Assembly (NCBI GenBank): GCA_965644295.1 | Contig: CBFFRP010000193.1 | Location: 1 to 60,842 of the forward strand | Direction: 5' to 3' | DNA from: Paraphysomonas bandaiensis | Lineage: Eukaryota; Protista; Chrysophyceae | DNA length: 60,842 bases | Shown: one piece after another, positions 2,250-60,842 of the stretch | Position numbering within the stretch: position 1 is the first letter of the stretch | Layout: the number at the start of each line of letters is the position of its first letter | Program-made: the position numbers and the translations under genes | Notes under the pieces: generated by a model | Database searches by the model: none | Told to the model about the DNA's origin: nothing | What the model saw: only the letters and a program-made list of their open reading frames with translations

Positions 2250-2288
2250 GTAGACCTGCTTAGTACAGTATATTCTGATATGTTCATT

Positions 2289-2535
2289 GAGTGGGAGTAT
2301 TGAACTACAACCAACTCCTACGTGCGTACTTGAAGTTTGGTAAAGCCAATCGCTAGTAGTTATCCTGTATTCTATGTAGCAATGAAATACAGAATATACA
2401 TGACTACAGTATAGGAGTAGCTATTACAAGTATACAAAGAAACTGAAAAATATAGTAGCTGTTAAAGATATGATTTGTAGAACAGAATGTCGATGTTGGT
2501 GAATGACGTGGTTCCTAACTCATAGGGCTACAACA
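2289..2535 (+). mobile_element. copia PPT and 3' LTR
   Basis: GAGTGGGAG (2289-2297) lies 40 bp after the pol stop, followed by TATTG (2298) ... CAACA (2535). The right boundary is inferred. Confidence 0.55.
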
Positions 2536-2605
2536 TCATAAAACTTACTATATCTCCTATAATATCAATCAGTCAATATTGCACTAACTAAAAGCGTAAA
2601 TTAAT

Positions 2606-2789
2606 AAACTAACGTGAGCCGCAAACATAGTCAGCAGATATTCTTCTGCCCACTCATAGCCGAATGCTTGTGTGATACAGTGTCTGGTGACTGTATATTA
2701 TGCAGCTAACGTTAATTTACCGGAGAAATATCTTCGGTACTTATCTCTCAGAACACCTCGGTAAAGTTCGAGTCCGACTTTGTTGAGGG
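2606..2789. repeat. Family-R fragments in mutually inverted orientation
   Basis: 2606-2680 matches 25533-25607 directly; 2722-2789 matches the reverse complement of ~25460-25528. Confidence 0.85.
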
Positions 2790-3119
2790 AATAAGCAATA
2801 ATAATCATCTATCTAATCTAACGACATTATTTTTCTTTAACGATCTAAACAACTAAAGCGTTCAAAAGCCAATATTTAGAACAGCAATTGTTGTTGCATT
2901 GAAAATAATATATGCAAAGATATAGTATGGTTCTCTGCCGCTAATTTACGTAGTCATTTAGATGAAATAATTTCGTGAATGCAAAGTGATGCAGCATATA
3001 AAACATGTCATACTACACATAAAAATAGAGCAAAACAGACATACGTAGCCACATTAGTTATGATATATGATTGTAACTATTTATAACGTTACTTTCAACA
3101 TCCGATGTATATAGTTGGG

Positions 3120-4853
3120 CTATTTCGCTACACCTCTAACTACTGGTAACAAAGCGAATCTTCGTATAGTAAGTAACCGCAGGGCATCCTTTTGAGATTC
3201 ACTTAGGGTAGTGTATCCTAGAATACCAGGAATAAGAGATGCAGAGTAACTCAATACTGCTTGCCCCCATGCATTGCAACCGACAATGTAGCATAACCTC
3301 GAGTCATCTCTCGGTGTGCCGATCAAGGGGACACAGTCGGGAGTCTCAGAGTACACACCATATTGCTCTGAGTACTCCATTGTAGCACTGCCTGTTGGTT
3401 GCAGATAAGGATATTTGTTATATGTCCACTTAGCCATTGCAGCACATCGCTCCTTCATACGAGGCGGCTTAAGAGCCGAATAGTGGTCCTCACCACTGAT
3501 GCGCATTACCCCGTCCGTCATACACCTGACATCGAAAACAGTAATCATACCACATCACATCGATATGACAATGTATAATCAAATTAGCAGGATGTGATCT
3601 TACCAGTCATGTGTGAACCCCCAGGTAAAGAAATTCGGTGAGTTTGGATGTTTCATTTCACCAAAAGGGTGCGGATGGTTTTGCTTTGCTACTTCATTAA
3701 CAGAATCCTTTATTCCGACAAGATAGGACCAGCAAGGGCGTATGACACCAGCTATAGAAGGATCAACGGACAAACCGCCTATATATACCCATTTTAAGTG
3801 AAATGCCTCAGGGGTTTAAACCAGAAATTAACAGAACACGGAAAATTTAATGCCATGGAACGATAGTCGGTGTGACAAAATAAAATCACTTACCAGTTGC
3901 AACAACCACATACTTGCATGAAATTTCATGTCCAGAAGTAGTCTTTACTACAGCATACGCAGCACCCTTGACATCGTTGACGCTGAGTACCTGGGTATTT
4001 TCGTAAACCCGTAATCCCAGTGCGTTTTCTAGAGTTTCATTGCACGATATGCCATACCGCAGCAAGTCTTTACAGTACTACATAATAATCATTGAAATGA
4101 AAAATACTTGATTAGATTGTGGTGAGAACTTACCTGCGCGGAATTAATTATTCCATCATCAGGAAAAAATATACCAGCGGAGAACCCTGGGCCAGCCTCA
4201 GCCTGCACCTTTTCTTCACTCCACCACTCTACTCCTGCACATCCGAGACGAGTTAGTGCGTCAAATTCAGCCCGCAAAGAACCGGCGTCCGATTCCTCTG
4301 CCAAGTACAAAGATCCTAATGATCGGATATGTGTTGGGTCACTCAGCACAGCAGCAGCCAATCTCTTTTCGATACGTATACCTTCAGCTGCAAGTGAGAG
4401 GTATCTGCGTGCACCCTCTTCTCCTGTGACACACATCGATCAATATTAGTTTTCATACAATTTATAACAAACGTTAAATATACCATGATGCTTACAAAAT
4501 TCAGCGGTTGATGATGCATATAAATTAACCATCATCTTAACAGTGCCTGGAGTTGCATCAAGGACAGCGGACCCGCTGCGATGAGCAAAGGCGAAAACAT
4601 TTTCGTCCTCGCAGTCTCCGGGTTTAATATGCGCCTGATCTGAACACACTACAGAAGACGTTCTTCCGTCACCTGGACTTCCAGCTTCAAGGAGGATAAT
4701 ATCACGCACACCAGAGGTTAAGAGGTGCACAGCAGTGGACGCCCCTGCCACTCCTCCTACAAACAATGGCGCAATGATCACTTACTATTATGATTAACTA
4801 CATCTCTTACCTCCTACAATAACAACCTCACAAGAGTCAGGAAGGGCTGACAT
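3120..4853 (-). CDS. FAD-dependent oxidoreductase (DAO/glycine oxidase-like), multi-exon
   Basis: Spliced N-terminus MSALPDSCEVVIVG|GGVAGASTAVHL (Rossmann GxGxxG-type motif), VVVATG, PCWSYL, ETPDCVPLIG and GCNAWG; GT-AG introns. Confidence 0.85.
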
Positions 4854-11196: not shown

Positions 11197-11830
11197 CAGG
11201 TTCGGTAACAATATATTGATTGGTGGACCTCAATGTTGCTTTTGTTAAATAGCTCACAACTCACAATATATTGCAATCACAATATACCGAAAGCTTCTTT
11301 GTTCTTTGCTGTAGGGTGTAAAATATAAGTCCATGCTTTGACGATGATTGCAACAATACAGAGCGAGGATGATGAAACTTAAAGCTGATTCTGGCTATGC
11401 GGAAAATTTCGTCACTCACCTCAAATTTAGAAACGAAAAGTTGAAATATCTAAGTTATGTTGTGTGTATTTCCAATACATATGAACGCCTGTTCAGCACA
11501 GCAAAACTTATTTTATTAATGTTGCAAAAACGTATACTACACTTAACAATGTGATGTTGTTTCTGAAAGCAAATCGAAAGTTGTGGCCCGATGCATGTAT
11601 ATTCAAATAATTTTGAATGAACATGGTGATGATGACGTCACCGATGATGGATCATAGGATGAGAAAAATTGTAATTAGCTAAACAGTAGCCAGCGAAATG
11701 GGTGTGAATATCATGTGATCTTAGTGACTTGTTCTAAAAATGGAATATATGGATGTTTTTACTTACAGATCAATTATTACTATATTGCAATAGTATTTTG
11801 GGCCGGTTCCGAAACCTCCATCAATATGAA
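11197..11830 (+). mobile_element. Degenerate non-autonomous hAT element (same family as 17660-18692)
   Basis: Degenerate TIR CAGGTTCGGTAACAATATATTG; dimerisation-domain relic CISNTYERLFSTAKLIL; colinear with the reverse complement of 17700-18260. Confidence 0.75.
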
Positions 11831-16883: not shown

Positions 16884-17659
16884 TTGATGTTACGCAGTCT
16901 ATTGTGTATTGCAAACCGTTAGTAATAGAGGATGCGATCTGCATTATTTATCCTCCCTATCAGATATGGTGGTTGTAAATCAATTAAGATGTGTACTGTA
17001 TTGTCCGTTTCTTGCTGTTATATATATTTAAGGCTAGCGTCTTTTCTTCAAGAACTGCGTTTCTTAAAGTGGTGAGCTATTCAACCTGACACTTTAGACA
17101 TCTGGGTGCAGGTTGATTGCAAGTTGTAGTCATCGTCTCCGCTACAGATGCATATCACTTGATGTGTGATGTTAATGAACTTATCACTTGTAGTTTTAGT
17201 AATATTGCTTTGAAATTGGACACTTACAAACTTGTAGTCATCAGTACTATGCTCTATGCTGTACATATCCTCAGTCCTCAGCATCTCAGCATGCGCTCTT
17301 TAAGAAGATGAAGCCAATAGGTGCAGAGAGTTGTACAGGTTATGTAAATTGGTCTCTCTGAAATGAAGTATTAGTTGAGCAGCCTATGGTGGCATCTAGT
17401 GTATAGCTAGTAGAGTACGTAGATTTGTAGTAATAATTTTCAGTCTACATTATTTAATTGTTACGGAACACATTCACGTTGTCCCTTATATTGTCTGACA
17501 CACATATCAAACGCTCTATATAAGATGAAAAAAAGTCATTCTTTTTTTGATTTATTGATATCTTTTGTGTGTATTCTTCATTCGTTGTTGTCTTTTTTTC
17601 TTCTTTTTCTTCATGCCATTTCTTACCATTGTTTTTTATGACTTCGTTATCGTCCTCAT

Positions 17660-18692
17660 CAGGGATAGGGAACAATATATTGCAATACTATTGTTAGGTA
17701 GCGTTCCATCAATAGTATTGATGGATTTTTTAAACCGGCCCTACAATACTATTGCAATATATTGCAATATATTGTACAATATATTGCAATATATTAGTAT
17801 GACTAATCAGTAAGTAAACACATCCGTAGTTTTCATTTTTAGTACTTGCCATATTTTATAAGGTCTAAGGTCACTTGATAATCAAACCCACTACTCTTAA
17901 CTAATTAAAAGTTTCCTCATACTCATCCTCTGAGCCATCATCGGTGACATCATCATCACCATATTCATTCAATATTGATTGAAATATGCTTGCATCCGGC
18001 CACAACTGTCGGTTAGCTTTCAGAAACAACAGCATATTAAGTGTAGTAGGATGCATACGTTTGCGCAACACTGATATAATCAGTTTTGCTGCGCTGAACA
18101 GGCGTTCACACGTATTGGAAGTACATACTACATGACTCGTGCACCTGTACTTAGATATTTCAACTTTTCGCTTCTTAAGTTTTTGAGCTGATTGAAGAAT
18201 TTTTTCCGCATAGCCAACTTCAGCTTCATCATCCTCTGTATTGTTGCAATAATCACTGTCTGAACGGAGATATATTCTAACAGCATCTTTCTCAGATCTT
18301 GTCAAGTCCAATTCTTCAGTTGTCTCTTCTTGTCACTATAGGATATATATACTATATTAAGAGAAGTACTGTACATACATGTGGAGAGGTGTAGAGTGCT
18401 GTTTGAGCTGGCGATACATAAAAAATAGAAAATAACATCAAAAATAGGCTTTTTTTCTTATTTTCCGGATATTTGTATACAGAGGCGTATATTTTGCACC
18501 ATACAGTTGAGGATCTTCTCTTATATGACTATCATAATATTGATTGCAATATATTGCAATAGTATTGTGAGCTCTATTAACAGAAACACTATTGATGGAA
18601 TATTTGACCAGTCCACCAATCAATATATTTTACAATATATTGCAATATATTGTACAATATATTGCAATACAATATATTGTTCCCTATCCCTG
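17660..18692 (-). mobile_element. Non-autonomous hAT transposon, 1,033 bp
   Basis: Perfect 23-bp TIRs CAGGGATAGGGAACAATATATTG; 8-bp TSD GTCCTCAT (17652-17659 and 18693-18700); ATATTGCAAT subterminal repeats; dimerisation-domain ORF 17901-18311 (CTSNTCERLFSAAK). Confidence 0.95.
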
Positions 18693-36624: not shown

Positions 36625-37220
36625 ATAACCGAGAAATTGATTACAACATTACAGAGGATGATGAAGCTGATATTGACTATGCGAATAAAATTCTTCAGTC
36701 AACTCAAAAACTTAAGAAACGTACAGGTCCACGAGTCATTAACGGTTACCAGGCCCTGGTATGTACTTCCAATACATGGGAGCGCCTGTTCAGCGCAGCT
36801 AAACATATTATATCAGTGTTTCGCAAAAGTATCCATCCTACTTAATATGCTGTTGTTTCTGAAAGCGATTCGACAGTTGTGGCCGAATACTAGCATATTT
36901 CAATAAATTTTGTGGATGAATATGGTGATGTTGACGTCACCGATGATGGCTCAGAGGATGAGGACGAGGTGGATTTTTATTAGCTATAAGCAGTAGTTGG
37001 TTTGGTTGTCATGTGATCTTAATGACTAATACTAAACATGGAATCTACGGATGTGTTTACTTACTGATTAGTCATACTAATATATTGCAATACATTGACA
37101 ATATGTTATATGTTGCAATATATTGTAGTTGTATTGTTGGGCATGTTTAAAATCTCCATCAATAGTATTGATTGAACGCTCTCTAACAATAGTATTGCAA
37201 TATATTGTTTCCTAGCCCTG
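36625..37220 (+). mobile_element. 5'-truncated hAT copy (family of 17660-18692)
   Basis: Dimerisation-domain relic plus right TIR CAATATATTGTTTCCTAGCCCTG ending at 37220. Confidence 0.85.
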
Positions 37221-37513
37221 ATTCAGAGAAATAACTAAGTAGAGTGTGTAATATTGAAGTACTAAATGCTTTTACTGGTAGGTACTCGTATTAGAAGTAC
37301 TCTACGCATAAACATGAACTAGTAGGTTTACTACCAATAACACAGATTGAATCAGTTTTACATGCCGTACAAATTACACTTATATCTATTATGTTGCGTG
37401 AAAAATCATATGTCCATTAGTTGTTCAGTCTTATTACTTATTTCTTTATTTATATATTATAATCGAAGGGTTAATCATTTTACATTACAGAGAGGTTAAA
37501 GGTTCGCACATCA

Positions 37514-43643: not shown

Positions 43644-44591
43644 TTACTCAGAACTTTGTGACACACGGAGGCGTTTATTCTGCGCTTCAAGGTCGTCACA
43701 TGCTTTCTTGATTTGCCAGGCTTTCATCAGTGTGTCGTTGGTCTTTGTAGTCATCCGCTCCAGCGCGGCCGCAATACCTTCCTGTTCAGTTTTTCTCTCA
43801 AGGTTGACTTCGTCGCACTTCCTCTTTACGGAAGTAGTTAAAGAGTTCACTTGTCGTAAGACACCTGTACAACTAAGTTACACGGTAGACAGCACACTCT
43901 AGAGGAAACACAACATGCACACCAGAAGAAACGTTGCATACAAAACGACACTCAAATGCGGCAACAAGTTATATGACTAACTCTCTGGAATACATATTCT
44001 GGTAAACAACACACCTTCCCCAGCAGAATTACTCTGTAACCACACAGCACTTCCATGACTGTCAGCAATTTCTAAATTCAAAAGCCTATTTGCCTGGTGT
44101 TCCATTTGAGCTTTAGCATTGGACACAGATTTCTTCCAAGCTTGAACATCTTTTTCTAATGGACCTGAAAAGAGACAAGCATATTACCCGCACGTTGGCA
44201 TAATATTATAGCAAATACACCTTCCGGCTTTTCAACACAATATCTACTGTTATCAACAGCGTCCAGTGACGTTCCATTGGCTACACGCGCCATCTCACCC
44301 TATTTACAATTGAGCGTTAATATTAATATACAGATATTAGCCAGATTTAAAACCTGAAGTACAGCTGAATTAGCAAATTTTAATCGCGGATAAGGCAAAT
44401 GGGATATATAATTCTTCGAGGGAGCGAAAGAGCGCATCTCATCAGCTATTAAGGCGTGAATGGCATCTTGTACAGCTGGATGTTCATACTCCTATATTTG
44501 AAGGTAAGATTATTTGTCCTTTCATGCAAGATATCCCAACCTTATCAATATACGGGAGAGCATCGAATTCATATTCCAGCAGATGATTCAT
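43644..44591 (-). CDS. BCAS2: Pre-mRNA splicing factor SPF27/BCAS2, multi-exon
   Basis: FDALPYIDK, ALIADEM, DVQAWKKSVSNAKAQMEHQANRLLNLE and EVNLERKTEQ coiled coil. Confidence 0.88.
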
Positions 44592-45202
44592 ACTCAACTA
44601 TACAATAACAAAATATTCTAATGAACGGGCGCACTGGTTTCGTCTAAGGTATGAATTTAATAGTGTTTGGTATAAGCGTTGAACAGATCGAAACCCACTG
44701 CTGCTTATTGAAATCAATGAACGATGATGCCTTCTCATGTACACCACTGTATAGTCTACATATAGCATCTACGCACACACCACTGCGATAGTCTCCTACT
44801 ACGATGTATACAGGTAGTACTGCGGTAGTTGTTTATTGTATATGGTGTACATATGTAATACAGTGTAGGGGAAAATCTACTGACGACGATACCACACCAC
44901 AGCAGTACTACAGCGTATTCCATGGTATACGATATATGGGTTCCAGAGCGTATCCGCCTACCCTCCTGCGGTCCTATGGGCACCCCCGGTCTCAAATATT
45001 GCACAATGTTTTTTGGTGATGTGCCGATCGAGCCCATACACACACAGCTGAAACACAAGGCCTCCAGAGGTCACTTAAGGCACTTATATATAGAAGTAAT
45101 CGTCAATTAGAGCCATCTAATTGTGAGTTATATTAAACAGTGGTGTAGTTTTTATTCCCCATTACGCTGATTGGAGTATCTATAAGAGTTATCGATAGTC
45201 TC

Positions 45203-48200
45203 ATGCGGGGGTTTAGTTACTACTTGAGCTTATATTTATTGGCTCAAATTAACCAGATCGCTGAGTGCACTTATGAGGGTCGATCCTGGACCAATCAAGG
45301 GGTGTATTTACAGAATTCTAATGGTGGTTATGACGTATATTCTCGATCTCCGTTTGTCATGTATGGCAGAGGTTATCAGACTGTACTCTCTGGTTTTTAC
45401 AGAGTTGACCCCGGTATGATGGTGGATATTCGTAGCTGGAAAGATGGGACCGATGTGTGGTCTATTCAGGCTTTAATGGATCCTCCTGATTCGGTACCGG
45501 CAGAAGTTGAATTAGATGACGATGGAAACGAGCTGATGGTGTATGACGGCAGTGCATATGGATTCTGGATAAGCGGCACTGGAACTTTAAAAACGGGAGT
45601 GATCTTTGCTGTTACCGCTCCTCAGGATATTATATTTTATCCTGATGAATATACGCGTTTGAACAGATCTGGGTCTGTTTATATGTACCGCGGAGAATAT
45701 AGTCAGTGGACTAATACTCAGAAACTCATCCCCGATGTTCCACAGCGAAATGCTTTTTTCGGTGATTCAGTAATGATGTGCCCGAAAATTCCAACGAATA
45801 TGGTCATTGGAGCACATGGTGATAATAGCAAGGGCCCGCTTCTTGCTGGCGCAGCGTATGTGTATCGCTCGACGCCAACAGGAAGATACTGGACGCAGTC
45901 TCAAAAGCTACATGCGTCCGATTATGCCCAACAGGATTGGTTTGGTTTCCGTGTGGGTATATATGATGAATTTTTGATGGTATCTGCACAGAAGGACGAC
46001 GATAATGGTATCGAAACTGGTGCAGTGTATGTTTTTCGTGAGGAACGAGCTGAAGGCCTCTACCAATGGTCTCAGCAGCAGAAGCTTTTGTCAACAAGGG
46101 ATGACAGTACCTGGTTTGGTGAATACTTATCACTTCACCAGCACACTCTTGTTGTGGGTGTTCCTTTTGAGCGTACCAATAGAGGCACAGCTTATGTGTT
46201 CAAAACGTACAAAACTCCTGAGATACCGTACCACAAACCTCACCCACATCCTCATCGCACTCTGACAGATTGTAATTTTACTGACAGCAACTTCACCGAT
46301 GGTAATTATACAGATGGTAATTATACGGATGATGACGACAACGGACACTGTCATCATCACCACCATCACCCAAAGCCGAAACCAAAGCCCAAGCCAATGT
46401 TCAAGTGGTGGTCACTTCAACAGAAGCTCTATCCGAGTGACCCCCACACTTTCAGGAATTTTGGGTCTTACACTAGCACATATGGCAACGGTGGCCTTAT
46501 TGCTGTTGGTGCATACGGCGAGGCATTTGGCGATACTGATTGGGATGACGATACTTCAGATAACTATCGCTCCGGGTCTGCCTATATTTTTGTCAAGGAT
46601 GACAAGTATGATAGGTGGTCACAGCAGCAGAAGTTCATTTCACCGACCCCCGCCAAGGGCGAGTACTTTTCCGACCCTTATCTACACGGTAGTGATCTAA
46701 TCATCCGCAACACTGTGCTGGGGTACAAGTATTCTGATAAGTTTGATTGGGACTGTTTACTAGTATCTGTGAGTGATCACTTTGGGGATGGATGGGACGG
46801 TGCATATCTGATTGCCTACGCTCCCGGGTCGAACACAAAGCTCACCGATCATTACGCTCCATTCTGCGACTCTGAAAATCCGTTGCAACTTCGGTACTGC
46901 CCTTTGATGGTCGAGGACGAGGGAGAATACCTGTTCGAGATATCTCATGATGTATTGACCAAAAAGTTTTCGAGTGAAATTCGATTCGAGATATATAATG
47001 AGAAGGACGGGAAGTACTACTATGGTGATATCGAAACGTCAATCAAGTTCCGTTGGGACTCCACAGAACGTCATTTTGACCATCTTTTAAGTAAGGAGGA
47101 CAAACTTGTGAAGAACGACAAGTGTCAGGCGTGTCCTGTTAAACCTAGTCCGAAGCCAGTGCTTCCTCACCGCGAGCTTAAGGGCGGAAAGTCGAGTACC
47201 AGCTCTCCAACGATATCACCCGCCCCCACCCTCAGTCAAGGTGACACATTAGACTGGAATGTAATGCAAATGGCGACGACCGAGCCGGATGGATGGTTTG
47301 GTGTTGGTGATTACAAGAACGGCACAGGGATGTCGTGGTATATTTATGATGGGAATGGCAAGAAGCTAATTTACACTGGCACCCTCTGCAATGGTTTGGG
47401 GTTATCATACGATTGCCCTCTGGTGTTGCCTGATGGAGATTATATTCTACGATTTGGTGGGGCATTGGATGCTGTTGCGGGCTCACATTCTTGGACGTTT
47501 TGCGGTCGATCCGGTGGAGACACTGAGATGCTGGTGTTTTCCGTTGTGAACCGGCAATGTATTGCGTACAGTCAAGCTACAGCTGCCGAATACTGTTCGG
47601 ATGAACTGAGCCTTACCCTTCTTGTGTCCGGCACTGTTCAGCTACAGGGAATATCCGCTGTAGAACAATTGAGTGCTAATGACTTCGCCGTTATTGGAGA
47701 TGCAATGATGCACCTGTCCCCTGTCAGTGCGAAGGACTCATCGGCATCTTTTGTTCGATATGATGATGGCTTGGTCGTAAAATTTACCATCTACATCGAT
47801 ATGAAGGCACTTGGGTACACCTCGTCAAACACCGATGACTGTATGGAAGTATTCGATATGGTATCAGATGCTCTTTGGTCGGCGAGCGAATCGGGTCGGC
47901 TGGCATCAGAGGTGGTTATTTCTTCTTCCACGCTCCAGTCAGATTCGAATGTAATGTCAAAACTGAAGGATATTAAGTTGTTGACTGTTGTCAACGAGGG
48001 CCCACAATTTCATCGTGTTCCTGCTGTTACGAGCAGTGATACGTCTTCAAGTGTTAAAGATACGAACACAGATCATCTTAAAGAGCATCTGTCGACAGAG
48101 CAGGTTGTGCTAGAAACAACGATGCAAATCGAATCCAACATCGGATACGCAATTGCTGCAATGGCGGCAGTGTTAGCTGCTGGCGTTGCGTGGAGAATAT

Positions 48201-48565
48201 CTGTACGAGAAAATGTTAAGACGAGACGCCCTTTTAAAGGCACTTTCTCTGGTGCTGTGAGTGAGGAGTCCGCAAGCTTGTCATCACACTTGCTGGACAG
48301 CTCGCAAGAGGAATCTCTGAGACCGAATTCAAAGAAACTGTGTAGAGAGGGTGTAGATTCGGAGAGTGTTGCCTTATCCAGGAAGGCTGGTGATTCTAGT
48401 CCAAGTTATTCCTCTTCCCGTAAGGCAAAGTCCATGCGGGTTATGTCCGCACTGGCTAGTATGAAAGAAGATCTAAAAGAAATGGCCGCAATAGAAGACA
48501 ATTCGCTGAAAAGATCTGATATTACTGAAGATATGGATACCCTACTAAGACACTCGAGAGCATAG
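45203..48565 (+). CDS. Intronless type-I membrane protein with FG-GAP (integrin-alpha-like propeller) repeats
   Basis: Signal peptide; repeats FFGDSV...IGAHGD..GAAYVY, WFGFRV..GAVYVF and QQKL; DHFGDGWDG motif; TM helix IGYAIAAMAAVLAAGVAW. Confidence 0.85.
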   Translation: MRGFSYYLSLYLLAQINQIAECTYEGRSWTNQGVYLQNSNGGYDVYSRSPFVMYGRGYQTVLSGFYRVDPGMMVDIRSWKDGTDVWSIQALMDPPDSVPAEVELDDDGNELMVYDGSAYGFWISGTGTLKTGVIFAVTAPQDIIFYPDEYTRLNRSGSVYMYRGEYSQWTNTQKLIPDVPQRNAFFGDSVMMCPKIPTNMVIGAHGDNSKGPLLAGAAYVYRSTPTGRYWTQSQKLHASDYAQQDWFGFRVGIYDEFLMVSAQKDDDNGIETGAVYVFREERAEGLYQWSQQQKLLSTRDDSTWFGEYLSLHQHTLVVGVPFERTNRGTAYVFKTYKTPEIPYHKPHPHPHRTLTDCNFTDSNFTDGNYTDGNYTDDDDNGHCHHHHHHPKPKPKPKPMFKWWSLQQKLYPSDPHTFRNFGSYTSTYGNGGLIAVGAYGEAFGDTDWDDDTSDNYRSGSAYIFVKDDKYDRWSQQQKFISPTPAKGEYFSDPYLHGSDLIIRNTVLGYKYSDKFDWDCLLVSVSDHFGDGWDGAYLIAYAPGSNTKLTDHYAPFCDSENPLQLRYCPLMVEDEGEYLFEISHDVLTKKFSSEIRFEIYNEKDGKYYYGDIETSIKFRWDSTERHFDHLLSKEDKLVKNDKCQACPVKPSPKPVLPHRELKGGKSSTSSPTISPAPTLSQGDTLDWNVMQMATTEPDGWFGVGDYKNGTGMSWYIYDGNGKKLIYTGTLCNGLGLSYDCPLVLPDGDYILRFGGALDAVAGSHSWTFCGRSGGDTEMLVFSVVNRQCIAYSQATAAEYCSDELSLTLLVSGTVQLQGISAVEQLSANDFAVIGDAMMHLSPVSAKDSSASFVRYDDGLVVKFTIYIDMKALGYTSSNTDDCMEVFDMVSDALWSASESGRLASEVVISSSTLQSDSNVMSKLKDIKLLTVVNEGPQFHRVPAVTSSDTSSSVKDTNTDHLKEHLSTEQVVLETTMQIESNIGYAIAAMAAVLAAGVAWRISVRENVKTRRPFKGTFSGAVSEESASLSSHLLDSSQEESLRPNSKKLCREGVDSESVALSRKAGDSSPSYSSSRKAKSMRVMSALASMKEDLKEMAAIEDNSLKRSDITEDMDTLLRHSRA

Positions 48566-49019
48566 TGATGTAAATTATTGCTTCGTAACTGGCATTTTTA
48601 TTATTGGAATGGTATAATAGTCTCTAGAAGCTTGTATGAGGTTAATATTATTGGGTGCATGGCCCCTATCGTGTTGCAAGTAAATAACTTCTTATACGGA
48701 TATAGTTGTAGCAAGTTTGAATTATTAGCTAGCACTCGTTCAAACGCTATATGGGATGGGTAAGAAGCGGGGCAGTATGAGAGTGATATCGAAGTACTAA
48801 TTAGAGCCAGCTTGCAATGTGGACGGTTCTTATTATTGACCTTTCTAGCGACTATAGATTTCTTAGTTATATCCTTTTAAAAGCATATCCAACCGTTAAT
48901 CGCAGCATGCTACAATGACTAGCTGCACTACGATCAATTATATGGTTACTTACAGTCACCATATGTAAATTTACCGAATATATTTTTCAGATAGTAGTGT
49001 ATGTCTTATCATTAGTGTA

Positions 49020-49630
49020 ATAACCAGCCGGCTTGCGTAATAATTAATTGGCAATTAATTGGTGACAGGTGTTCAACAATAATAATTGTTATTATTAATC
49101 AAGCATTGCATTGCATATTGCCAATTAATTACCTTTACTTTTACTGATAGATTTTAGAATAACTTTCTGGACTATAATCTCATATTAAAGAAATATTAAC
49201 ATTTTCACGCAGAAAATTCAACATTTCATGGTGTCTAGGAAAATCTAGTCATAACAACCTTTGCTCTTCTAAACAACCTCTCACAAATATTGGTAGTGCT
49301 ATACAAATATACTTCATGCAACGATACCGTGTTGGAAGTTTGACGCGTGCTTTATGGCACTTTCGGTTGTATTTAAGTAAACGAATGGCCTCGTCTTCCT
49401 CCTCCTCATCTTTCTCTTCACATCAAGTTCACCTTCGTGTGAAGGTACATCACTTTAAGAAAAAGCGTCGCACCTGTGCTTTTCAGCGCAGTTCAGTTCT
49501 TCTTCCCTACCGCGCTGAATTTTGACTACTGCTCTCTCGAAATCTGCATTTTGAACAATTTCCGCGTCTGCACCCAGGTGAAATTTTATACCAGGGTACT
49601 GACGAATTAAATCATCAAATTTGTTCATTG
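49020..49630 (-). mobile_element. Degenerate hAT transposase 3' relic with AATTAATTGG subterminal repeats
   Basis: Reverse translation ADAEIVQNADFERAVVKIQRG ... YRCMKYI ... TNICERLFRRAKVVMT, with frameshifts. Confidence 0.7.
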
Positions 49631-49824
49631 GATGCCATCCTGTTGAATAAATAAGAATGATAAGTTTGGCTGTCCGATGCTTCTAGTCCATTATTGTTGT
49701 ACACACACACTACGGCTGGAGGAGAATGATCCACCAACGGCTGAATTCTCCAATGAGAAGATTATCAGGAACATTGGACTTATGATTGGATTAGATGATG
49801 CCGATATCAATAAATTGATATTAC

Positions 49825-51482
49825 ATTAGCAATAGGCGTTTAAGAGTCAGTGCTTAACTCTGATATCCAATTATCTAACGCTGCGAAAGCTGCTTGTGTG
49901 TGTCACGGTGGCCAGGTTGCTGGCCAAACTGGTTGAGCGGGAACAGCCCGGCCTGGTGTTGCTCGGCAAGCAGTCCATCGACACCGACAACAATCAGGTC
50001 GGGCAGATGCTGGCCGCGCTCACCGACTGGCCGCAGGAAACCTTCGCTTCCCGCATCGAGCGACAGGGCGACGAAGTGCAGGTCACTCGCGAGGTGGATG
50101 GCGGCCTGCAGACCCTGGCGCTGACGCTGCCGGCGGTGGTGACTACGGATCTGCGGCTGAACGAACCGCGCTATGCGTCGCTGCCCAATATTATGAAGGC
50201 GAAACAGACACCGTTTGAAACCCTGGGCCTCGACGAGCTGGGCGTGGAACTCGCCAGTGGCGTGGTGATGCTGAACGACTGGCTGCACCCGCCCGACAAC
50301 TTCGGCATTCTGGTCAAAGACCATCTGGTCGGTCAGTTGACCGACAGCTATAACGCCGGCGTACTGGTGTTGCTGGTATTTATCGGCGGCTTTGTGGCGC
50401 TGATGGAACAGTCCGGTGGTGGCCAGGCCTTTGCCCGCAAGGTCACCCACTGGGTCAGCACCAAGTGCCGGGCCCAGGTGGCAGCCTGGCTGGGTGGTAT
50501 CGTCATCTTCTTTTCCGATCTCGGCACGCCGCTGATCGTCGGCCCGGTATTTCGGCCGCTGTTCGACAAGCTCACGCTGTCGCGCCAGAGACTGGCCTTC
50601 ATCATCGACTCCACCGCCTCGCCGGTGGCGATTATGGTGCCTTTTATCGGCTGGGGCGTGTACATCATGGGTCTGCTGCAAAAGGAATTTACCGCCCTTG
50701 CGCTGCCGCTGACCGACTGGGAAGCCTTTATTGCCGCCATTCCGTTCCAGTTCTATGCCGTGCTGGCGGTGGCCATAGTGCCGCTGATCGCCTTCAAGAA
50801 ACTAGACTTTGGCCCTATGGCCGAAGCCGAGCGCGCCGCCGAACGGGGTGAGATTGCCCCCGGCCCGCAAGAGCAGCAAACCCTGTTCAGTCACGACAAC
50901 GCCCGGGCCTCGTTTGTATGGGCGCCACTACTGGTGATGGCCGGGGTGTTGTCGTCAGGTAGGATATGTATCAAAAGTAGGTAAGATAAATTCTTCTCCA
51001 GAGTGGCTAACACAATTTTGCTCAAATAAATCCTACTGAGGAAGACGTAGATATTACAAATGTAATTTGCTTGAAGAATAGTGTCAGATCTTTGTTATAA
51101 TCTCAATGAGCTGAGTCAGGAGCAAACAAGAGTAGATAGTAGATAGTAGAGTATGGTAAAACATAGCACTGTATTCACATTACATTGGCCCAGCAGATGC
51201 CGGTAAATGTAAACTCATGCATCTATAACTCAAGCAAAATATTAATTAATAAGCCTGAGCGATATTTTCTCAATTTAGAAGTCTATAGCTATCCCGGATG
51301 ATCGACTAATGCAAGCAACTCTAAACTCCAGATGCATATTTATTGCAGGCCCCAATACATTTACAAAAGAAACACAAGTGGTGAGTGGGGAGAATAGTGC
51401 ATGCTAGCTAAAAATTGGGTACATATTAGTTTCTCAGAAAACAAATTCTGGTACTTATCCCGGAAACACCACGGCGTGGTGC
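49825..51482 (-). repeat. Degenerate family-R copy hosting the bacterial insert
   Basis: 49825-49904 matches the reverse complement of 26205-26345 / 24868-24957; 51285-51380 and 51425-51482 match the reverse complement of 25620-25703 and 25480-25540. Confidence 0.7.
49905..50949 (+). other. Bacterial-derived GC-rich insert: internal etfB fragment fused in frame to an internal Na+/H+ antiporter (NhaC-family) fragment
   Basis: LGKQSIDTDNNQVGQMLA...TREVDGG...TDLRLNEPRYASLPNIMKAK (EtfB) runs to ~50255, then IGGFVALMEQSGG...LAFIIDSTASPVA...FQFYAVLA (NhaC family). Abrupt GC and GC3 jump relative to the flanks; no introns or stops. Confidence 0.9.
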
Positions 51483-51971
51483 TACTACGAATTAGTAGAG
51501 GGTGGATCTACTATTATTCCATAATGGTTATTGAATTAATTTATAGCTAAATATGCACCTGCAATATATTCAACCATACCCATACATACTCATATTGTTA
51601 TACAGTTATTAGGTCACAACAAAATCTAACCAGCAAATCACACTGCTACCTGCAACAATCGGATTGTAAGAAGCAGAGGCTGTGAGTGTGTAGACTATAA
51701 TAAAAAAGTTGACAATGATCTATCATGTTGGCTTCCATATCAGGATCGCAGTGCTATAGTCGTCTCAAACGGATGATAGTAATTCGTTTCGTGATGGAGA
51801 CTCAACACCATCGACTGATTCAACAGCTAATCAGCTCATGCAGTGCTTCCACCTGCTATCGCTCTACAAAGCATATATCCTGTACTGGGAATGCTGCTGA
51901 GAGTAGAGTTGAGTGGGAAGAATGTCATGATAGTTCTGTTCTCACTCTCTCGTGAGTGTCACTGAGATCTT

Positions 51972-52183
51972 ACCTGTACCTGTGCATCTGTCCCTATACA
52001 CCTGTACCTGTGCATCTGCTATCGGCTCACACGACAAGAAGAAATGTTGTCGTAGTACTTGTATACCAGATGCACAGGTACAAGTGTATAGAACAGATGC
52101 ACAGGTACGACAGATGCACAGGTACAGGTGTATAGAACAGATGCACAGGTACGACAGATGCACAGGTACAGGTGTACAGGTAC
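51972..52183. repeat. Fold-back cluster of CAGATGCACAGGTAC units (MITE-like)
   Basis: Two units on the minus strand (51972-52018) face five units on the plus strand (52067-52183). Confidence 0.75.
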
Positions 52184-52232
52184 AGCCATATTCTCCTCTA
52201 TTTGAAGCGGCCATACGCATAGATGGCAATGC

Positions 52233-53468
52233 ATGGATCTGTCAGTAACAGATATGCATGTACTTATTGTTGCATGCATTATCACCTCGAGCTGTTATAC
52301 GACAGCAGCAGTGAGGGGTCAGTCTAATGACGCCCATACAGACACATGCAGAGATACACACTCCTATATATCCACAGACCCTCACACAGAGACAGAGACA
52401 GAGACAGGGATACACAGTAAATTAGTGTTTGCAGATGGGGCATCTTATGAAGGAGAAGTTCAAGAGGGCAGAATACATAATTATGGAAAGTACACTTATC
52501 CTGATGGGTCTGTGTATGAGGGCCAGTTCAGCAATGGGAAGGTCACCGGGAAGGGTAAGTACGTGTTCGCCAACGGAAAGATATACGAGGGTGATTTCGT
52601 GGATAGTAAAATGCATGGTCATGGAGTGATGGTGTTCAGCGACGGAACAAAGTATACTGGAGAGTTTTATCAAAATGCTAGAGAGGGACGTGGTACAATT
52701 CAGTTTGCTGACGGCAGCGTATACAATGGCGAGCACAAACACAATCGTATCAATGGATTAGGCTCGATGAAATACCCCTCTGGTGATATGTATGAGGGCT
52801 CATGGAAGGTTCTTTGAATGTAGGATTACATTGATGTTTGATAATAATATGCACAGGACGAAGTTAAGCATGGAAAAGGAACAATGCATTTTTACAGTGG
52901 CAAAGTGTACGACGGTTATTGGGCAGATGATAGCATGCATGGTCACGGGGTTATGACATATCCTGACGGGAAAGTATTTAATGGAAATTACTATCACAAC
53001 AAGAAATCTGGTCATGGTACACTGACACTTACTGACGGATCCATCTACGAAGGAGAGTTCAAAGGCAATAAAATGCACGGCATAGGTATTATGAAATTTG
53101 CCGATGGAGCTGTATACACAGGAGAGTGGGTGGAAAACAACATTCATGGTCATGGTACAATGACTTTTAATTCGGAATCTTATACTGGTATGTGGCAAAG
53201 TAATCAGCGACACGGTTTTGGTAGAATGGAGTTCACGGATGGTGCTGTTTATGAAGGTCAGTTCAGTAGTAATAGTATTGAAGGCTTCGGTCGTATGACA
53301 TATTTCAATGGTGAAGTGTATGAAGGTGTATGGAGTGTTGGAGAATTAGTTGATACTACAATTTTGAATAGCATGCGTAGGTGGGCTTTACATGTTGTTG
53401 GGAGAAGTTATACATTCCTGTTGTCACTTTTTTTGAAATGTTGTGTATGCTTTCATAATATTGAATAA
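52233..53468 (+). CDS. MORN-repeat protein with hydrophobic N- and C-terminal segments, one intron (~52809-52855)
   Basis: More than 12 YxGxFxxxxxHGxGxxxxxDG repeats. Confidence 0.9.
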
Positions 53469-54049
53469 TAGCTATTACCATTGATCCATACGTTTTAGGT
53501 TTTAGTAACACTTGAAGACAAGATGTTAGAGACTGCCTGCTAGGCGTTAAGTCATTTACAATGCTAGTACAGACTACATTAGCTTAGTGCTGTGAACGCA
53601 ATAATAAAATAAATATTTGAACGATGCTGCAGAAAACTTATTAATTTACCACTCAAACTATAAAAATTATAACGATTGAGTCGTCCGATTTGAGTTCTGA
53701 TATGTCAAGAGGTTGTCTATATAATACTTTAAAACCCACATAACAATCAATTTGAAGCGATGGCGGAATGGGAAAGACAAGTATAACAAATGTGTTGAGA
53801 CAGAAATCGTAAGTTATGAATTCATCAGAATGATTGCACCTGCTCAAATACCATATCAGTGCTGCATCTTATTTATCTACTCCATGCATGATACCACATG
53901 CACAAATCAACCTGTGAAGCAATGCACTACTTAGCCCGCGCATATCACTATTATGCAATAACGCAACACAGGTACCTATATAATCTTTGATTCATCCCGT
54001 GGTATTTTAGATATTTTCAGAAAGGCTCGAGTTGATATAATATAGACCA

Positions 54050-56988
54050 CTACAACTGAATCGCAGAAAATTTCTCACTAGTTTCAGGAGACCTCTGGCG
54101 ATTACGAATGTACTCTGTCAATGGAACAGCAGATAAGATAACAGATCACGTGAACAAACTTGTCAAAATAAGACCACAGTGGTATACACAATACCGTAAG
54201 ATACTACTTTATTTTCCATCACAATTTAGTAATACAGATAAGGAAAAGCATACTGACCAAGGGTATTACGATAGTGAGCTTTTACTGCTGATCCCATTGC
54301 CTGTCCTCCGTCTTCAGACCCTATTTGTTCGTTGATAAGCGCGATTAAACCGCTCAAGTACCGCACGTGGATAAGAGGGTTGTTGTTTTCATAGTAGAAA
54401 ATATATCTGTCAAATTCGTTAGGTCATATTACCTGATAAGAATAACATATGATATGCAGACTACCACAAACACATAGTCCAATATATAACAATTACCAAC
54501 CTGTCCAAGATTTCAACAAATATATTGGGATTGCACACGGATGCAATTTTGAGTGACCGCTGCATGCACTCCAACACCCTGTCGCAATCTGCGTATCTAG
54601 TTCCGTGTACAGCTGGCTCTTCTTCACCATCAGCAACTATGGGTGGGTCCTTAGGCCAAAACAAATGAGAGCATAGAGTAACCATGCGACACTGATCGGG
54701 CTTCTTCAAGAGCTTGTTTGCATACTATACGACAAGAAATAAACTAAATTGACACTGTATAATGAAGGATAAGACTCCGTGTACCTGCGCTGTTTTGGTA
54801 ATTAATGCCTCATAGTCCTCCGTGGGAAAGTTGCGACAGTTCAAAAGCGTCCCAACGATAGCAGTCAGAGCTCGCACCTGAGACTTGCTCTCACTAATCT
54901 CACACTCATAAATCAATAATCCTTCTTTTACGAACTCATACGCAATAGCAGAAAAATTGCATGCATCCGCCGCCTGATAATGCAAGCAAGTATAAAACAA
55001 CACACATCAACGGTATACGGAAATTTGTCAAATAGTCAGTTCATCATGATACCTGTGCCGCTTGAAGAAAAAGCTTCATTGAAATTTCTGGATGAGAAGT
55101 GGCCATGGCGGTCACAATCTCGATAACAAATTGGAACACCTTTCGGGAACTGTACTGAGGGGCGACGTCCTGTTCCGTTTCAGCCGCTTTCTCTTTTGCA
55201 AGTACCCTCTTCGCCAAGGACAATGCGGCAAATACGAGAGGGACGAGAGTGAATTGAATGCGCTGAGCGCCACCGTTAATGAATTTGGAACGTGCTGCCA
55301 CATATATGCGAAGCAGTACATCGGTATCATCATTCTGCATTAAATGCACAACTTTGGCGACAAGCACTTGTTCTTCCTTAAATTGGTCATCAACTGGTGG
55401 CTCCGTGCCGTCCTCATCAGCTTCTCTTGTGGTTCCGTCCGGGTCCTTCAGAAGTGGGGTAATGATTGCAAACAATTGTTCCGCCTGGTCCACTTCTGTC
55501 AGTGGGGCGTTCCGTGCAACCACGCTGCGCAGAAGGGAAACAGCAACGTCTTTCCAATTTCCCCACGGAAGGAAAGACATAAGAGTGGCATATTGCTGAA
55601 GATCAAGAACCTTGAGGGCAAGAGAGGATAGGGGGACTGAGAGTAGTTGCTCAATCTGTGCTGTTGTGTCACGAAGGGACTTCGTTGTCGAATGCCTCCT
55701 CCTTCAGCAGCCAGGGATGTTTGAAAGTCACTTTTTCTATAAGTGCCACACACTAGCAGCCAGACAGTGGGCAACATAGTCGAGCTTGTTGGGGTAGCAC
55801 TTCAATGAAAAATTAGTGAGAGCCGTTTGAAGCCGCAAGGTTTCTGTGAGTGTCAAATTCGTTCGATTTTCAATGAGAGTTGTAATGCAGTCGTTAAACA
55901 TTTTGAACGCATGAATCTCGGAGGGGATCTGACCGGTGTTGTTGGCTGCATAGTTAGCTAAGCGATCCATCATGGCCTCTAGAATAGATCGTACATTGAC
56001 TTTTCTTTGAGATTAACACATGTATGCAAAAAAGGTTCAAAGTGGCTAGATGGAATTCGTCAGGAAACACCTGTATAGTGCAGTCCATGAGATATGTCTG
56101 CGCGATTGTATCTTTGCACAAGACTACTTGCTCCAGGATCTTAGGAAGAACATTTACTCGATACTCTTGCAAATCCAAACCCTCTAGTTCACTCAGTCGA
56201 ACCAAATTCGTACCTACTAGGATGCGTAGGTCTTGACGTTCTTTTTCGCGCTTTTTACGGTCTTCTTTTGCCCCCTGTTTTGCAGTCGCACCCAGAGGCG
56301 ATTGGCTTGTTCAAAATTTTGGAGGACAAAATTATAGGCATCTTGTACATTTCCACTGACCCCTTCGAAAGCGGAACCTGTATCAGGCAGACGCTTTTTG
56401 GTCACATGGCTAAGGTAGTTGCGGAGAAAGAGTCCACGCATCGGGTTCTGTCTACCCCTTTGATCATGTCCACTAAATCCTTCAGAATATCCTTTGCAGG
56501 AACTTCCGGGAGTCAATATAGACCCCACCCACACAGCAGAGTAAATGCAGCGCGGGGAAGTACCTGGGAACACGATTGAACTTTTTCATATAGCTCTTGA
56601 ATCTTGTGTCCATTTCGCTGCAGAGTTGAAAAGAGAGTATTCTTCCATTTCTCTCTATCTCATCTAGAACTTTCATATAAAGCTCATAATAATGCTTGGG
56701 GGCCAGTTGGTTTGTACGTAACTCTCTGAGCATTTCAGTCGCGTGGTCTAGTGCGAGCTTCACGTTATCCCCATCCTGTACACAGACAATTACATCATAC
56801 CATTCACCACACAGTGCTGTCGAAGTACCATGGCTACGCTGCTTAAAAAATAGCGTGTTCCTTTACCTTCGTCACGGATTGCTCGATCGGTCCTATTCAC
56901 AGAGTCATAAGAGCGGAGCGGTCAATACATATATATATCCACTCCCTCCACTCACCGCATCTGTTCCGTTTCATTAATAGGCCGCCAT
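54050..56988 (-). CDS. VPS35: Retromer subunit VPS35; the 5' half carries many frameshifts
   Basis: [69 protein letters not shown] and LLKKPDQCR. Confidence 0.92.
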
Positions 56989-57564
56989 GTCCCGTTAATT
57001 ATGATTCGATACACGGCTTTGTTATACGATTGTACACTGATGCCTAGTGTACACGCTGCTTCTTGTGGTGTGATGGTTGCTTCCAGCCAGGTGAGGCAGC
57101 AGGATAGCACAGCAAGAAAGTGGATACGAAGTGATGATCAGGTACTCGTTTGACATGTACTGCTGTATATGTACTGTAGTACTACTTTTGCTCGCATTGT
57201 TGGTTGACACCGCTGTACTAACGTACTAATGTACCACTACTCGTACTCGTATATATCATATTACGGATCTGGTCCACATGGATGCCGACATGAACGTATC
57301 TTAAGGTGATAAGAAACAGTGAACATTATGGATCATACTGACATGAATCTCGACCAAACAACTGCTCTACATAACTGGAGATGGATTTATACAAATCAGT
57401 TTGCTGTCAAGAGCTCAATTCTTGTGACAATATAATCAGCGATCTGACAGTCCTGGAGGAACACAATGGTTCTGAGTGAAAGCCACGGCCCTATCAGAGG
57501 ACAAGCATCATTCGATGATGTACATTCACCTTGTTCTGTGTCGTATATGCGATTGTACGATGCA

Positions 57565-57900
57565 ATATAGAGAGAGGACGGTGACAGAAACACCATTCAC
57601 GCACAGATTTCTAATGATTGGACAGGCGGTTCAAATGTCAAAAGAAGTGGCACGGAACAAATCACAAGCAATGTCAAAAATTTCGAGATGTTTCCTTTTT
57701 CCATGCTGTTCACATGACAGCAATGAAGCATCTGACACTTGGCACTGCTTGGAATTTCTTAGCACCCTGTCTTTAGAAGCTCAAACGTATCTCTGGCAGC
57801 GACTGCTAATACTGCGTAGTTAACACCATCTCTCAGGGTGATATGATTTATTTTCTAATTTAGTTGTTTCAGAAGAAACAACGTTGTCACTGTTCCAAAA
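57565..57900 (+). pseudogene. Degenerate Crypton recombinase N-terminal relic
   Basis: CQKFRDVSFFHAVHMTAMKHLTLGTAWNFL aligns with FQCFGGFLIDHAVHGTTKKPLTLGTAWQYL of the 16011 gene. Confidence 0.7.
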
Positions 57901-58154
57901 ATATGCAGTACATAGCCGCAGCACGTGTGCCGACATGCACACACAATAAAGAGGTACTAGCATGCGCTGCTATTTGGATTTTCTTCCATGTTGTTGTAGT
58001 CATAAAAGCGTGTACATAGTTGTGTAAAACTAATAGAGCAATCAAATTATTACAAACACAAACAGTCGATATCCTGTAAATGTGCCCTATGAATACGGAT
58101 ATACACTTGCTGTAATGCTTTCACAAGTGGAACCTCGATAATTAGTAACAAAAA

Positions 58155-60842
58155 CTAGAGCCATGTGATATGGGAAGCGATTTCCTCTGAGCTCTTCTTC
58201 GATGGCAATTTCAACCTCTTCATCCTCACTGTAGTCTCATCATCCCCTTCGTCCTCATACACCACCTCAATGTAGTGCTCCATCGTAATAGTAGTCGTCT
58301 TCATCAGTTCCTGTGTGTTGAACTTCCACCAACTGGTTATTTTCGTCAATTTCATACGATTAAGGCATCTTCAAACTCTTCAGGAGGCCGACTTTGATAT
58401 GCACCCTCCTGAATGATTTCATCGCCATTCAAAACCTCATCTTCTGGAACCGGTACCATATGCTCCGACTGTCTCTCTGTACGTTCATCATCCCCTAACA
58501 TCACAGCCTGCACACCTTCCGGTGGGCGGGAAATACTTAACTCACTCATACTTAAACCAGGTTCATCCATTTCTTTTTCCTGTGCTTCCTCTGGAGTAGG
58601 TGTGTCCGAATTTTTGTAACGGAGGGGATAGCTTCTTATCTAACGTATTCTTGTCGGCAGAGAGTTCACTCAGTGCTGATACTCTTATTTTCATACAAGG
58701 CCGTATCACCTGTGCTTGTGGATCGCCGTTTCTTCGGCCCTTCGCTGAGGCGGTGTACCCAGATCGTCTGCATCAATCGAATTGGAGCTTATAGATGGCA
58801 ATAAACGACTCCACATCGGCCAACGCTGCGAAGGCGTTTCGGGAGTGAGGGGATCGATCGAGTCCATGACCACCTGGACGACGACCGCCCTTCCTTGCGG
58901 ACGAAATAACACGATCAGATTGCTACGACTGTGATAACCCACACCCCTCTGACTAGACATTGGACGGGGCTACTGGACTACGATTTAACCCGAAAGGTGA
59001 CTTCGTGCCGTCCTTAGACTCCATATCCTCATGGACCTTAAGGACATCCAGTTCGTTTAATGAATTACGGCGACGAATTTGGCGTATTTTTGCCCCAGGT
59101 TTGCTGTCAATTATCGTTTTCATTGCCATAGTAGTTGGAGAGTCCGTACCGCTCGATGCTCTACGTAAGGGGACCCTATCAACTATCTCTGCAGCACCCT
59201 GGACAGATCCCTGTAGAGAGCGTCTAGACCCGTAGAGGTTGTTAGTGGAGGCAGTAGACGTAGGCTTTCGAGTGGGAAGCGAAGAACGAATGGCAGGAAC
59301 GGACATTCTGGGGGTGGTTGCAGGGCGTGTCTCCAGGTGACGATACTTCTATGTATCAACAATCAGGGTGATGAACCTACCATGTGCAGCTATCATTACA
59401 CACTACAAAACACACTTTCCAAGATCACAGTAAAAGGCCCATAGCATATCACATAAATACTTACACTAGAAAGAGATGGATTGACAAGGTAGTCTCATCA
59501 TTGTAAAATCTCACACTTCCCGAAAATGCCACTCCAAAGATTCTGTACACAACCCAAAGAAATATTACCACTTTACAATACACCATCAAATACACAACCA
59601 AAGCGATCACGTACATATGTAAAGAAGCAATTGTACATCGAAGACACAGAGTAAATATGCCGCCGTCTGTGAAATGAGCTGTCAATAATAATAATATGTC
59701 AGCACAAGTAATTCAGAAGCTCATAACTTGTCGCTTACTCTTATGAGAGCCTCTAATAAGAGTCATTAGGAAAATAGACAATCCCAAAAATATACTGAGC
59801 ATAACTTGGTTTTGGTCGTCATGTTCATGCTGAATTTAAAAGTTAATTCGAAATAATAACGCATATATAATTCAAACCAAGCGTAAATCTTCATATATAA
59901 GCTTAATCGAGACACCGACGCCTGCAATAAAACAGTAAATACGCGCATGCATGCATACAGCAGCATATATTTTAAGAAGTGTATAATATACATAACATCA
60001 AGTGGAAAACAATTGTCGCGCATTTCATATATAGGTCAATCTTGGCAAACCTACCAAATAACGTAAATGATAAAAATGGATGGAGACATATCCATAACAT
60101 TCCCTTGCTTCGAGATATTCCCAACGCATGAGCTGCATGTTGCTATGTGGTGGCGGACGTCCCGAAGTACTAAAAACCAAATTAGTAGTCACATAAAAAT
60201 ATATGCAAGAGTACACCCATAACGAAAATAATAACAACCATACCAGCACAGCCAGAAAAAAAATAAGAAGCGAGCCAAGAAGGGTAAATGCATAAATTCG
60301 ACCAGGAGTTAGGCTAGTGTTGATCGGAAGGATCAGTAGCAATGACAGCCTCGCCTGCTGAAACATAGATCCACTTGAGACGCAGATCATGATATGGAAC
60401 ACTATGTCGTACCGAGCACAAGCATGACAAAGGTACCAGTTCTTGATGCATGATGATGAACGTTAGTTGGAATCAGTGCACTGCCGAGTAATAATTTATG
60501 ATTGCTAAACTCCAAACTTCCGTTTACGAACTCACGGTACATACCTGCGTCCAACAGTTCTTAATGATCAAACATGAACCAAACACCAAGACTTCCCATA
60601 CCGCCCATCTAATAAAACGAATTATCGCATAGATCACAGTAACTGAAGTATCAGTTTTGCACAGTAAGATAGCTATCGTTTGGGACTCCCAGAATATTCT
60701 TGACATGATATAGTGCAAAAAAACACTCACCCTAAAAACTCAACTAATGAAGCTGCCATGATTATGTATGTATGAGTGTATAAATCACTCGTTGGAACGA
60801 AGTAGTTACTGCACATGATGGCCATGCCTGACAATATCAAAC
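58155..60842 (-). CDS. Probable multi-pass membrane protein with a long disordered C-terminal tail; frameshifted, starts beyond the window
   Basis: Several hydrophobic ORF pieces at 59400-60800 followed by Ser/Pro/acidic pieces at 58155-59306, all on the same strand. Confidence 0.4.

Follow-up and report, generated by a model that had tools for sequence, protein, structure and literature searches.

A chimeric piece of Oceanisphaera-like DNA integrated among broken host repeats in Paraphysomonas bandaiensis

The genome of Paraphysomonas bandaiensis contains a short stretch of bacterial DNA in which internal fragments of two unlinked Oceanisphaera genes, etfB and an NhaC-family antiporter gene, are joined to each other in frame. 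The insert is physically integrated in the host chromosome, and it sits in a row of broken host repeats on both sides. Very probably it represents a one-off, non-functional integration. All positions below refer to the window, by which we mean the whole 60,842-nucleotide stretch that was analyzed (contig CBFFRP010000193.1 of assembly GCA_965644295.1, hereafter C193). An earlier reading made from the letters of this stretch (the sequence-only reading) had proposed a very recent integration of gammaproteobacterial DNA, either as a patch at a chromosome break or as cargo captured by a host dispersed repeat, family R. Recent integration as a repair patch is supported by our analysis, which found both a donor genus and chromosomal integration; the cargo proposal fared poorly.

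Composition, donor and junctions of the insert

GC content is 62% over positions 49905–50949; the adjoining 500 bases have 41% on the left and 36% on the right, and the window as a whole has 41%. An open frame of 362 codons, free of stops, covers the segment on the plus strand (49896–50984; first in-frame ATG at 50007). These figures bear out the GC-rich segment with an uninterrupted frame that the sequence-only reading described, but its bounds of 49905–50949 need correction: comparison with donor relatives places the donor-like DNA at 49903 to 50950/50951. Pfam finds an ETF domain (PF01012) in the first third of the fused frame and the Na+/H+ antiporter family (PF03553) across the rest. The first piece (49903–50249, plus strand) is an internal part of an Oceanisphaera-type etfB, about residues 96–210 of 249. 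The second (50251–50951, plus strand) is an internal part of an NhaC-family Na+/H+ antiporter gene, about residues 33–265 of about 500. The two are fused in frame at ...ELGVE-L-ASGVVML, the sides of the join being positions 50249 and 50251. Pfam and the donor comparison thus agree with the earlier description of two internal fragments of unrelated bacterial genes joined in frame. Both domains are truncated inside their fold and, with both genes present as internal fragments, the insert is not a complete coding unit.

The best matches of both halves are from Oceanisphaera (Aeromonadaceae), a donor genus that bears out the suggested gammaproteobacterial origin. The etfB piece has 93% nucleotide identity to O. 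sediminis JCM 17329 and 90% to the MAG P03SST1Cbin.11, and clusters with these two (99/99). The NhaC-family piece has 98% nucleotide identity to O. sediminis and 90–94% to other Oceanisphaera. The gap between 93% and 98% (Fisher p 4e-5) means either that the donor strain had a divergent etfB or that the pieces came from two cells. A protein search with the NhaC piece, limited by length, gave 72% at best, and among the matches listed in a metagenome scan there was no closer donor and no host copy.

The sequence-only reading had proposed matching each half to find the donor and to see whether the two genes are neighbors there; the donor genus was found, and adjacency was not. In five Oceanisphaera genomes etfB and nhaC lie on separate contigs, neither of the 10-kb loci around these genes contains the other gene, and in O. 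sediminis etfB is at least 42 kb from a contig end. From the separate contigs and neighborhoods we conclude that no bacterial chromosome supplied the join ready-made. We therefore rejected a natural etfB–nhaC fusion or adjacency in a bacterium, the genes not being neighbors in Oceanisphaera. One long O. ostreae match (L030) was considered as a natural fusion, and its nucleotide similarity covers the nhaC part only.

At the left junction, a 4-bp microhomology, TCAC (49903–49906), is common to the R2 subfamily of family R and the etfB donor. R2 copies read ...CTTGTG(C/T)G-TCAC-CGCAAG, the donor ...CCGC-TCAC-GGTGG and the window ...TGTGTG-TCAC-GGTGG; TCAC is present in 23 of 30 motif copies. At the inner junction, the etfB match stops at 50249 and the nhaC match starts at 50251, the O. 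sediminis nhaC limits being taken from match coordinates only. The single C between them (50250) is assigned to neither closest donor, and this join is near-blunt, with no microhomology seen. Donor similarity stops at 50950–50951 on the right, where no microhomology can be called. The donor side of these junctions, like the private changes discussed below, is judged from closest relatives standing in for the true donor strain.

No target duplication is visible at the filled site. The sequence-only reading had noted TGTC at both junctions and had reported that removing the insert approximately restores the family-R motif. Neither point held. Both TGTC 4-mers overlap donor-like sequence and so do not form a target-site duplication; this overlap, together with an excision that leaves R unrebuilt, led us to reject TGTC both as target duplication and as shared microhomology. 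R reads on as ...GTCAC-CGCAAGCACC or ...GTCG-CCGCAAG, and excision at TGTC leaves the window reading ...TGTC-GTCAGGTAGG. In the other host loci examined, the GTCAGGTAGG continuation had no match within two mismatches.

Integration and the surrounding host DNA

A second contig, C332, carries the same 1045 bases at 100% identity. Its surroundings are the same too, although the flanks of the two contigs differ by about 1.8%. At contig level the insert was also found, with identical letters, in three public runs (X1, X8 and X9), each from a different study, one of 2019 and two of 2024. A 741-base X1 contig (49877–50617) has zero differences and spans the inner junction fully; it extends only 26 host bases past the left junction, under the 31-base crossing rule. 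The right junction is crossed by an X8 contig (50689–51015) that includes about 65 bases of host DNA; X8 is a seawater metagenome whose flanks carry variants of their own at 51592, 51718 and 53068. X9 has identical contigs inside both pieces. The insert is found on at least three haplotype backgrounds, and its depth in the public runs is comparable in magnitude to that of single-copy host DNA. The second contig and the three runs argue that the insert is not an assembly chimera. Because X1 is possibly the source sample and the three runs could represent closely related strains, they show that the insert is real rather than that it is widely fixed. X1 has one base missing at 50680, which would put the insert out of frame; it likewise lacks one base of a 4-base run at 48232, inside the expressed FG-GAP gene described below, so both are treated as likely read errors. 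None of the joints listed in the public runs was an empty site, leaving the pre-insertion state and any deletion unseen.

C193 and C332 show zero differences over 49814–50992, that is, the insert with about 90 bases to its left and 40 to its right. About 22 differences would be expected there at the right-flank rate and about 6 at the regional mean, and the other difference-free runs of comparable length fall in genes. Most simply, the patch would have formed on a single homologue, and gene conversion or loss of heterozygosity would later have given the second homologue the same copy; selection is an alternative account of the identity. The interval 49814–50992 can be regarded as a possible gene-conversion tract.

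Expressed host genes lie on both sides. To the left is an FG-GAP repeat gene (45203–48565, plus strand), 100% identical to a Paraphysomonas protein of MMETSP1103, with an RNA contig that reaches 49030. To the right is a MORN-repeat gene (52233–53468, plus strand) with a 48-nt intron at 52807–52854. Contig depth over the insert and the FG-GAP gene is about half that over the MORN region in both X1 and X9. The FG-GAP region (44500–49000) is single copy in the assembly, and a structural difference between homologues near the insert is therefore possible. Several other features of the window were recorded. From about 53800 to 57000, and on to 60842, translations read as a VPS35-like gene with many frameshifts; from 56000 the two contigs differ by dense one-base indels, as is typical of poorly polished long-read consensus. 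A palindromic and tandem repeat block with a 44-base unit (51972–52185) lies between the MORN gene and an abundant short polyadenylated RNA contig (51577–51868, minus strand, seen in run X11), whose strand has no ORF of more than 30 codons. Another dispersed repeat family, 450–600 bases long with AT-rich inverted ends, has three copies in the window (11343–11797, 17658–18254 and 36638–37222).

The repeats to the left of the insert are all incomplete. Dispersed repeat Q (49030–49715; C332 ends inside it, at 49088) has more than 40 copies at 76–92% and is cut short at 49715; the eight copies inspected all read on into common sequence absent at this site. It is followed by a 112-base piece of dispersed repeat S (49717–49828), with nine other genomic copies at 74–95%. 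The S piece is low-copy and has an open frame on both strands, and a Pfam search of it returned nothing significant. By match coordinates only, it overlaps by 4 bases (ATTA, 49825–49828) with an 82-bp tail-proximal piece of family R (49825–49906, minus strand). This piece is 86–92% identical to R2 copies and lacks the terminal tail; the sequence-only reading had correctly taken the left flank for a reverse piece of family R.

On the right (50952–51502, minus strand) lies a single-copy sequence that is related to long-form R but has diverged to about 70% identity, with its head at 51502. It is 64–74% identical to long-R copies and 83–84% over 51068–51143, and no close copy was found besides that in C332. 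Positions 50952–50991 align only weakly to R. The R-like DNA on this side had been noticed earlier and given the bounds 51285–51482; the homology in fact starts near 50992–51020 and ends at 51502. The diverged head (51440–51502) retains two perfect hairpins in letters unlike those of modern R copies, possibly as a compensatory variant, and simple folding of the R head gave z -1.2, which is not significant. The RNA contig mentioned above ends 75 bases from this head.

Family R itself is a SINE-like retroposon. It is about 510 bp long and non-coding; its ends are fixed, its middle varies between short, R2 and long forms, and the genome contains 718–3192 candidates. Intact copies are flanked by target duplications of 9–16 bp and have no terminal inverted repeats; R as a Helitron or MULE-like carrier was rejected given the variable-length duplications and the lack of inverted ends. 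One short R copy is nested inside a long one (L120:1230-2750), and at two loci (L018 and L019) long R copies lie just past the ends of copia-like reading frames.

Decay, expression and competing explanations

Twenty substitutions are private to the insert, including 10 that change an amino acid and 13 GC-to-AT transitions. The count was made against 8–9 relatives per gene with the O. sediminis nhaC left out, and some of these changes may be the donor's own. Private change amounts to about 1% at non-synonymous sites (778 sites). Four changes fall at columns that are at least 90% conserved (131/132 once and 28/28 three times); 11 bacterial relatives have 0–2 such changes each, and the closest relative has none. 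With relatives representing the true donor, these numbers point to modest decay after insertion. The integration is thus recent, as the sequence-only reading had it, but its "very recent" holds only in part, given about 1% of private amino-acid-changing substitutions and at least three haplotype backgrounds. The insert is probably silent. In X11, which is presumed to be an RNA run, was read at contig level and may come from another strain, no contig lies over 50028–51385; the run deeply covers the FG-GAP and spliced MORN transcripts on either side. A collection that contains the neighboring gene's MMETSP1103 protein has no record of the chimera protein.

That the insert is an artificial fusion with DNA of a co-cultured bacterium, made in assembly or in the library, is largely refuted and in our view extremely unlikely. 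Cultures of bacterivores are xenic, parts of the contig are error-rich (56000–60842) and X1 is possibly the source sample, all of which would speak for an artifact. Against this, two contigs with different flanking alleles contain the insert, and contigs span its internal and right junctions. Three studies have the identical sequence, one of them the seawater metagenome with its own flank variants. The sequence does not run on into bacterial neighbors (a 21 kb Oceanisphaera query around both genes matched nothing in the assembly beyond the two pieces), and it is changed at invariant residues. Coverage matching a co-cultured bacterium had been named in advance as a sign of a chimera; we found host-like depth, and contigs that cross the junctions. 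The same data bear on whether the insert is a young chimeric gene, consisting of an EtfB half and about half an antiporter, that is kept by selection. We judge this unlikely. The frame is in phase and stop-free, and the insert is identical in C193, C332, X1, X8 and X9 while non-coding flanks differ. However, a random join is in frame 1 time in 3 to 1 in 6, and the probability that the frame stays open after 20 substitutions is 0.56, so the intact frame is weak evidence. Selection for function also fits poorly with domains cut inside the fold, changed conserved residues and the lack of a transcript or protein record in the sources named above.

The remaining alternatives give family R an active part. 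In one, foreign DNA is taken up at the GCTTGTG motif and carried along by R or its LINE partner, and the copy here is cargo-bearing. Read on the minus strand, the order of head (51502), body, insert and tail-proximal piece (49825) resembles a single interrupted element, and R is so abundant that any screen of its copies is a sample. We nevertheless regard this as very unlikely. The flanks come from different subfamilies with different divergence, and the R head is present at 51502 but the tail, which is needed for retrotransposition, is missing left of 49825. No target duplication was found around the unit from R2 piece to head, and the composite has no second locus other than its C332 counterpart, so it has not been amplified. 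The sequence-only reading had asked whether other R copies hold foreign inserts; 73 R-containing loci (235 kb), a sample of hundreds to thousands of copies, held no bacterial-like DNA. The screen applied a bacterial-versus-host fifth-order Markov score to stretches of 200 bases. The highest score in the 73 loci was 0.077, below the 0.107 of the insert's weakest 200 bp (insert mean 0.17). A GC-rich stretch after R in locus L154 was read and scored; it proved to be host repeat and not bacterial. The high density of R makes a landing beside it likely by itself. A template switch, in which a LINE reverse transcriptase jumped from R RNA to bacterial etfB and nhaC mRNA, is scarcely credible to us. 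Both pieces are coding, in one orientation and between R sequences, and the TCAC microhomology could seed a jump. Yet both are antisense to R, whose head at 51502 is on the minus strand, so first-strand cDNA would require an antisense bacterial RNA template; and, again, the R tail and a target duplication are absent. A broader idea is that R SINEs mark recurrent sites of prey-DNA capture, through LINE-endonuclease breaks or template switching, with other R copies holding other bacterial pieces and patches being copied to the second homologue. If true, bacterial DNA would enter a eukaryote genome again and again by a route that repeats direct, but we give this idea very little credence.

Proposed mechanism and comparison with known systems

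We favor a single patching event. Fragments of an O. sediminis-like chromosome, most plausibly from digested prey, would have reached the nucleus. End joining would have ligated two of these fragments, one of 347 and one of 700 bp and both from unlinked genes, to each other and into a chromosome break or deletion among decayed repeats, with a 4-bp microhomology on the left, a near-blunt middle and no target duplication. The patch may then have drifted by about 1% and become common to both haplotypes, probably via gene conversion or loss of heterozygosity. We infer the prey origin, the break, the end-joining pathway, the conversion step and the lack of function; the insert does not qualify as a cargo-carrying element or as a functional acquired gene.

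Transfer of prey DNA to the nuclei of phagotrophs is widely assumed and is usually known only from old, finished genes. Here the intermediate itself can be seen in raw form: its donor is placed near species level, its junctions can be read and its decay is slight. It supports end joining as a route of entry, and it shows that incoming pieces can be rearranged into an in-frame chimera as they arrive. One silent event leaves theory as it stands; the insert is useful as a marker for the frequency of such events in Paraphysomonas and for the spread of a new insert to both homologues. Literature searches returned nothing on this insert, on horizontally transferred fragments in Paraphysomonas or on SINEs with bacterial DNA.

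Pack-MULEs, Helitrons and chimeric retrotranscripts are gene-capturing mobile elements, and like them the insert has several gene fragments between repeat-derived sequences. Unlike them it shows no terminal inverted repeats, Helitron ends, composite target duplication or amplification, its flanks come from different subfamilies, and R is SINE-like. In yeast, break-patching experiments are said to capture extrachromosomal DNA at double-strand breaks. As in those patches, short foreign pieces, sometimes concatenated, fill a break without target duplication; the present insert is natural, its donor is bacterial and its break would be deduced from the product.

Paraphysomonas is a bacterivorous chrysophyte. 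[quoted passage not shown] The insert departs from the ratchet, so presented, in having brought no whole gene and no function, and the donor's status as prey is likely rather than observed. Complex numts and nupts and mosaic "numins" consist of several fragments whose junctions are blunt or have a microhomology of a few bases (Portugez, Martin, Hazkani-Covo 2018, PMC6215612). The insert differs from them in that its donor is a free-living bacterium and not an organelle, and in that there is one event here, with the empty site unseen. It resembles them in its non-adjacent donor fragments, its blunt or short-microhomology junctions and its integration in a chromosome: in both, unlinked extranuclear fragments have been linked together and attached to chromosomal DNA. 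Complex numts are non-functional and decay after insertion, as the present insert probably does too.
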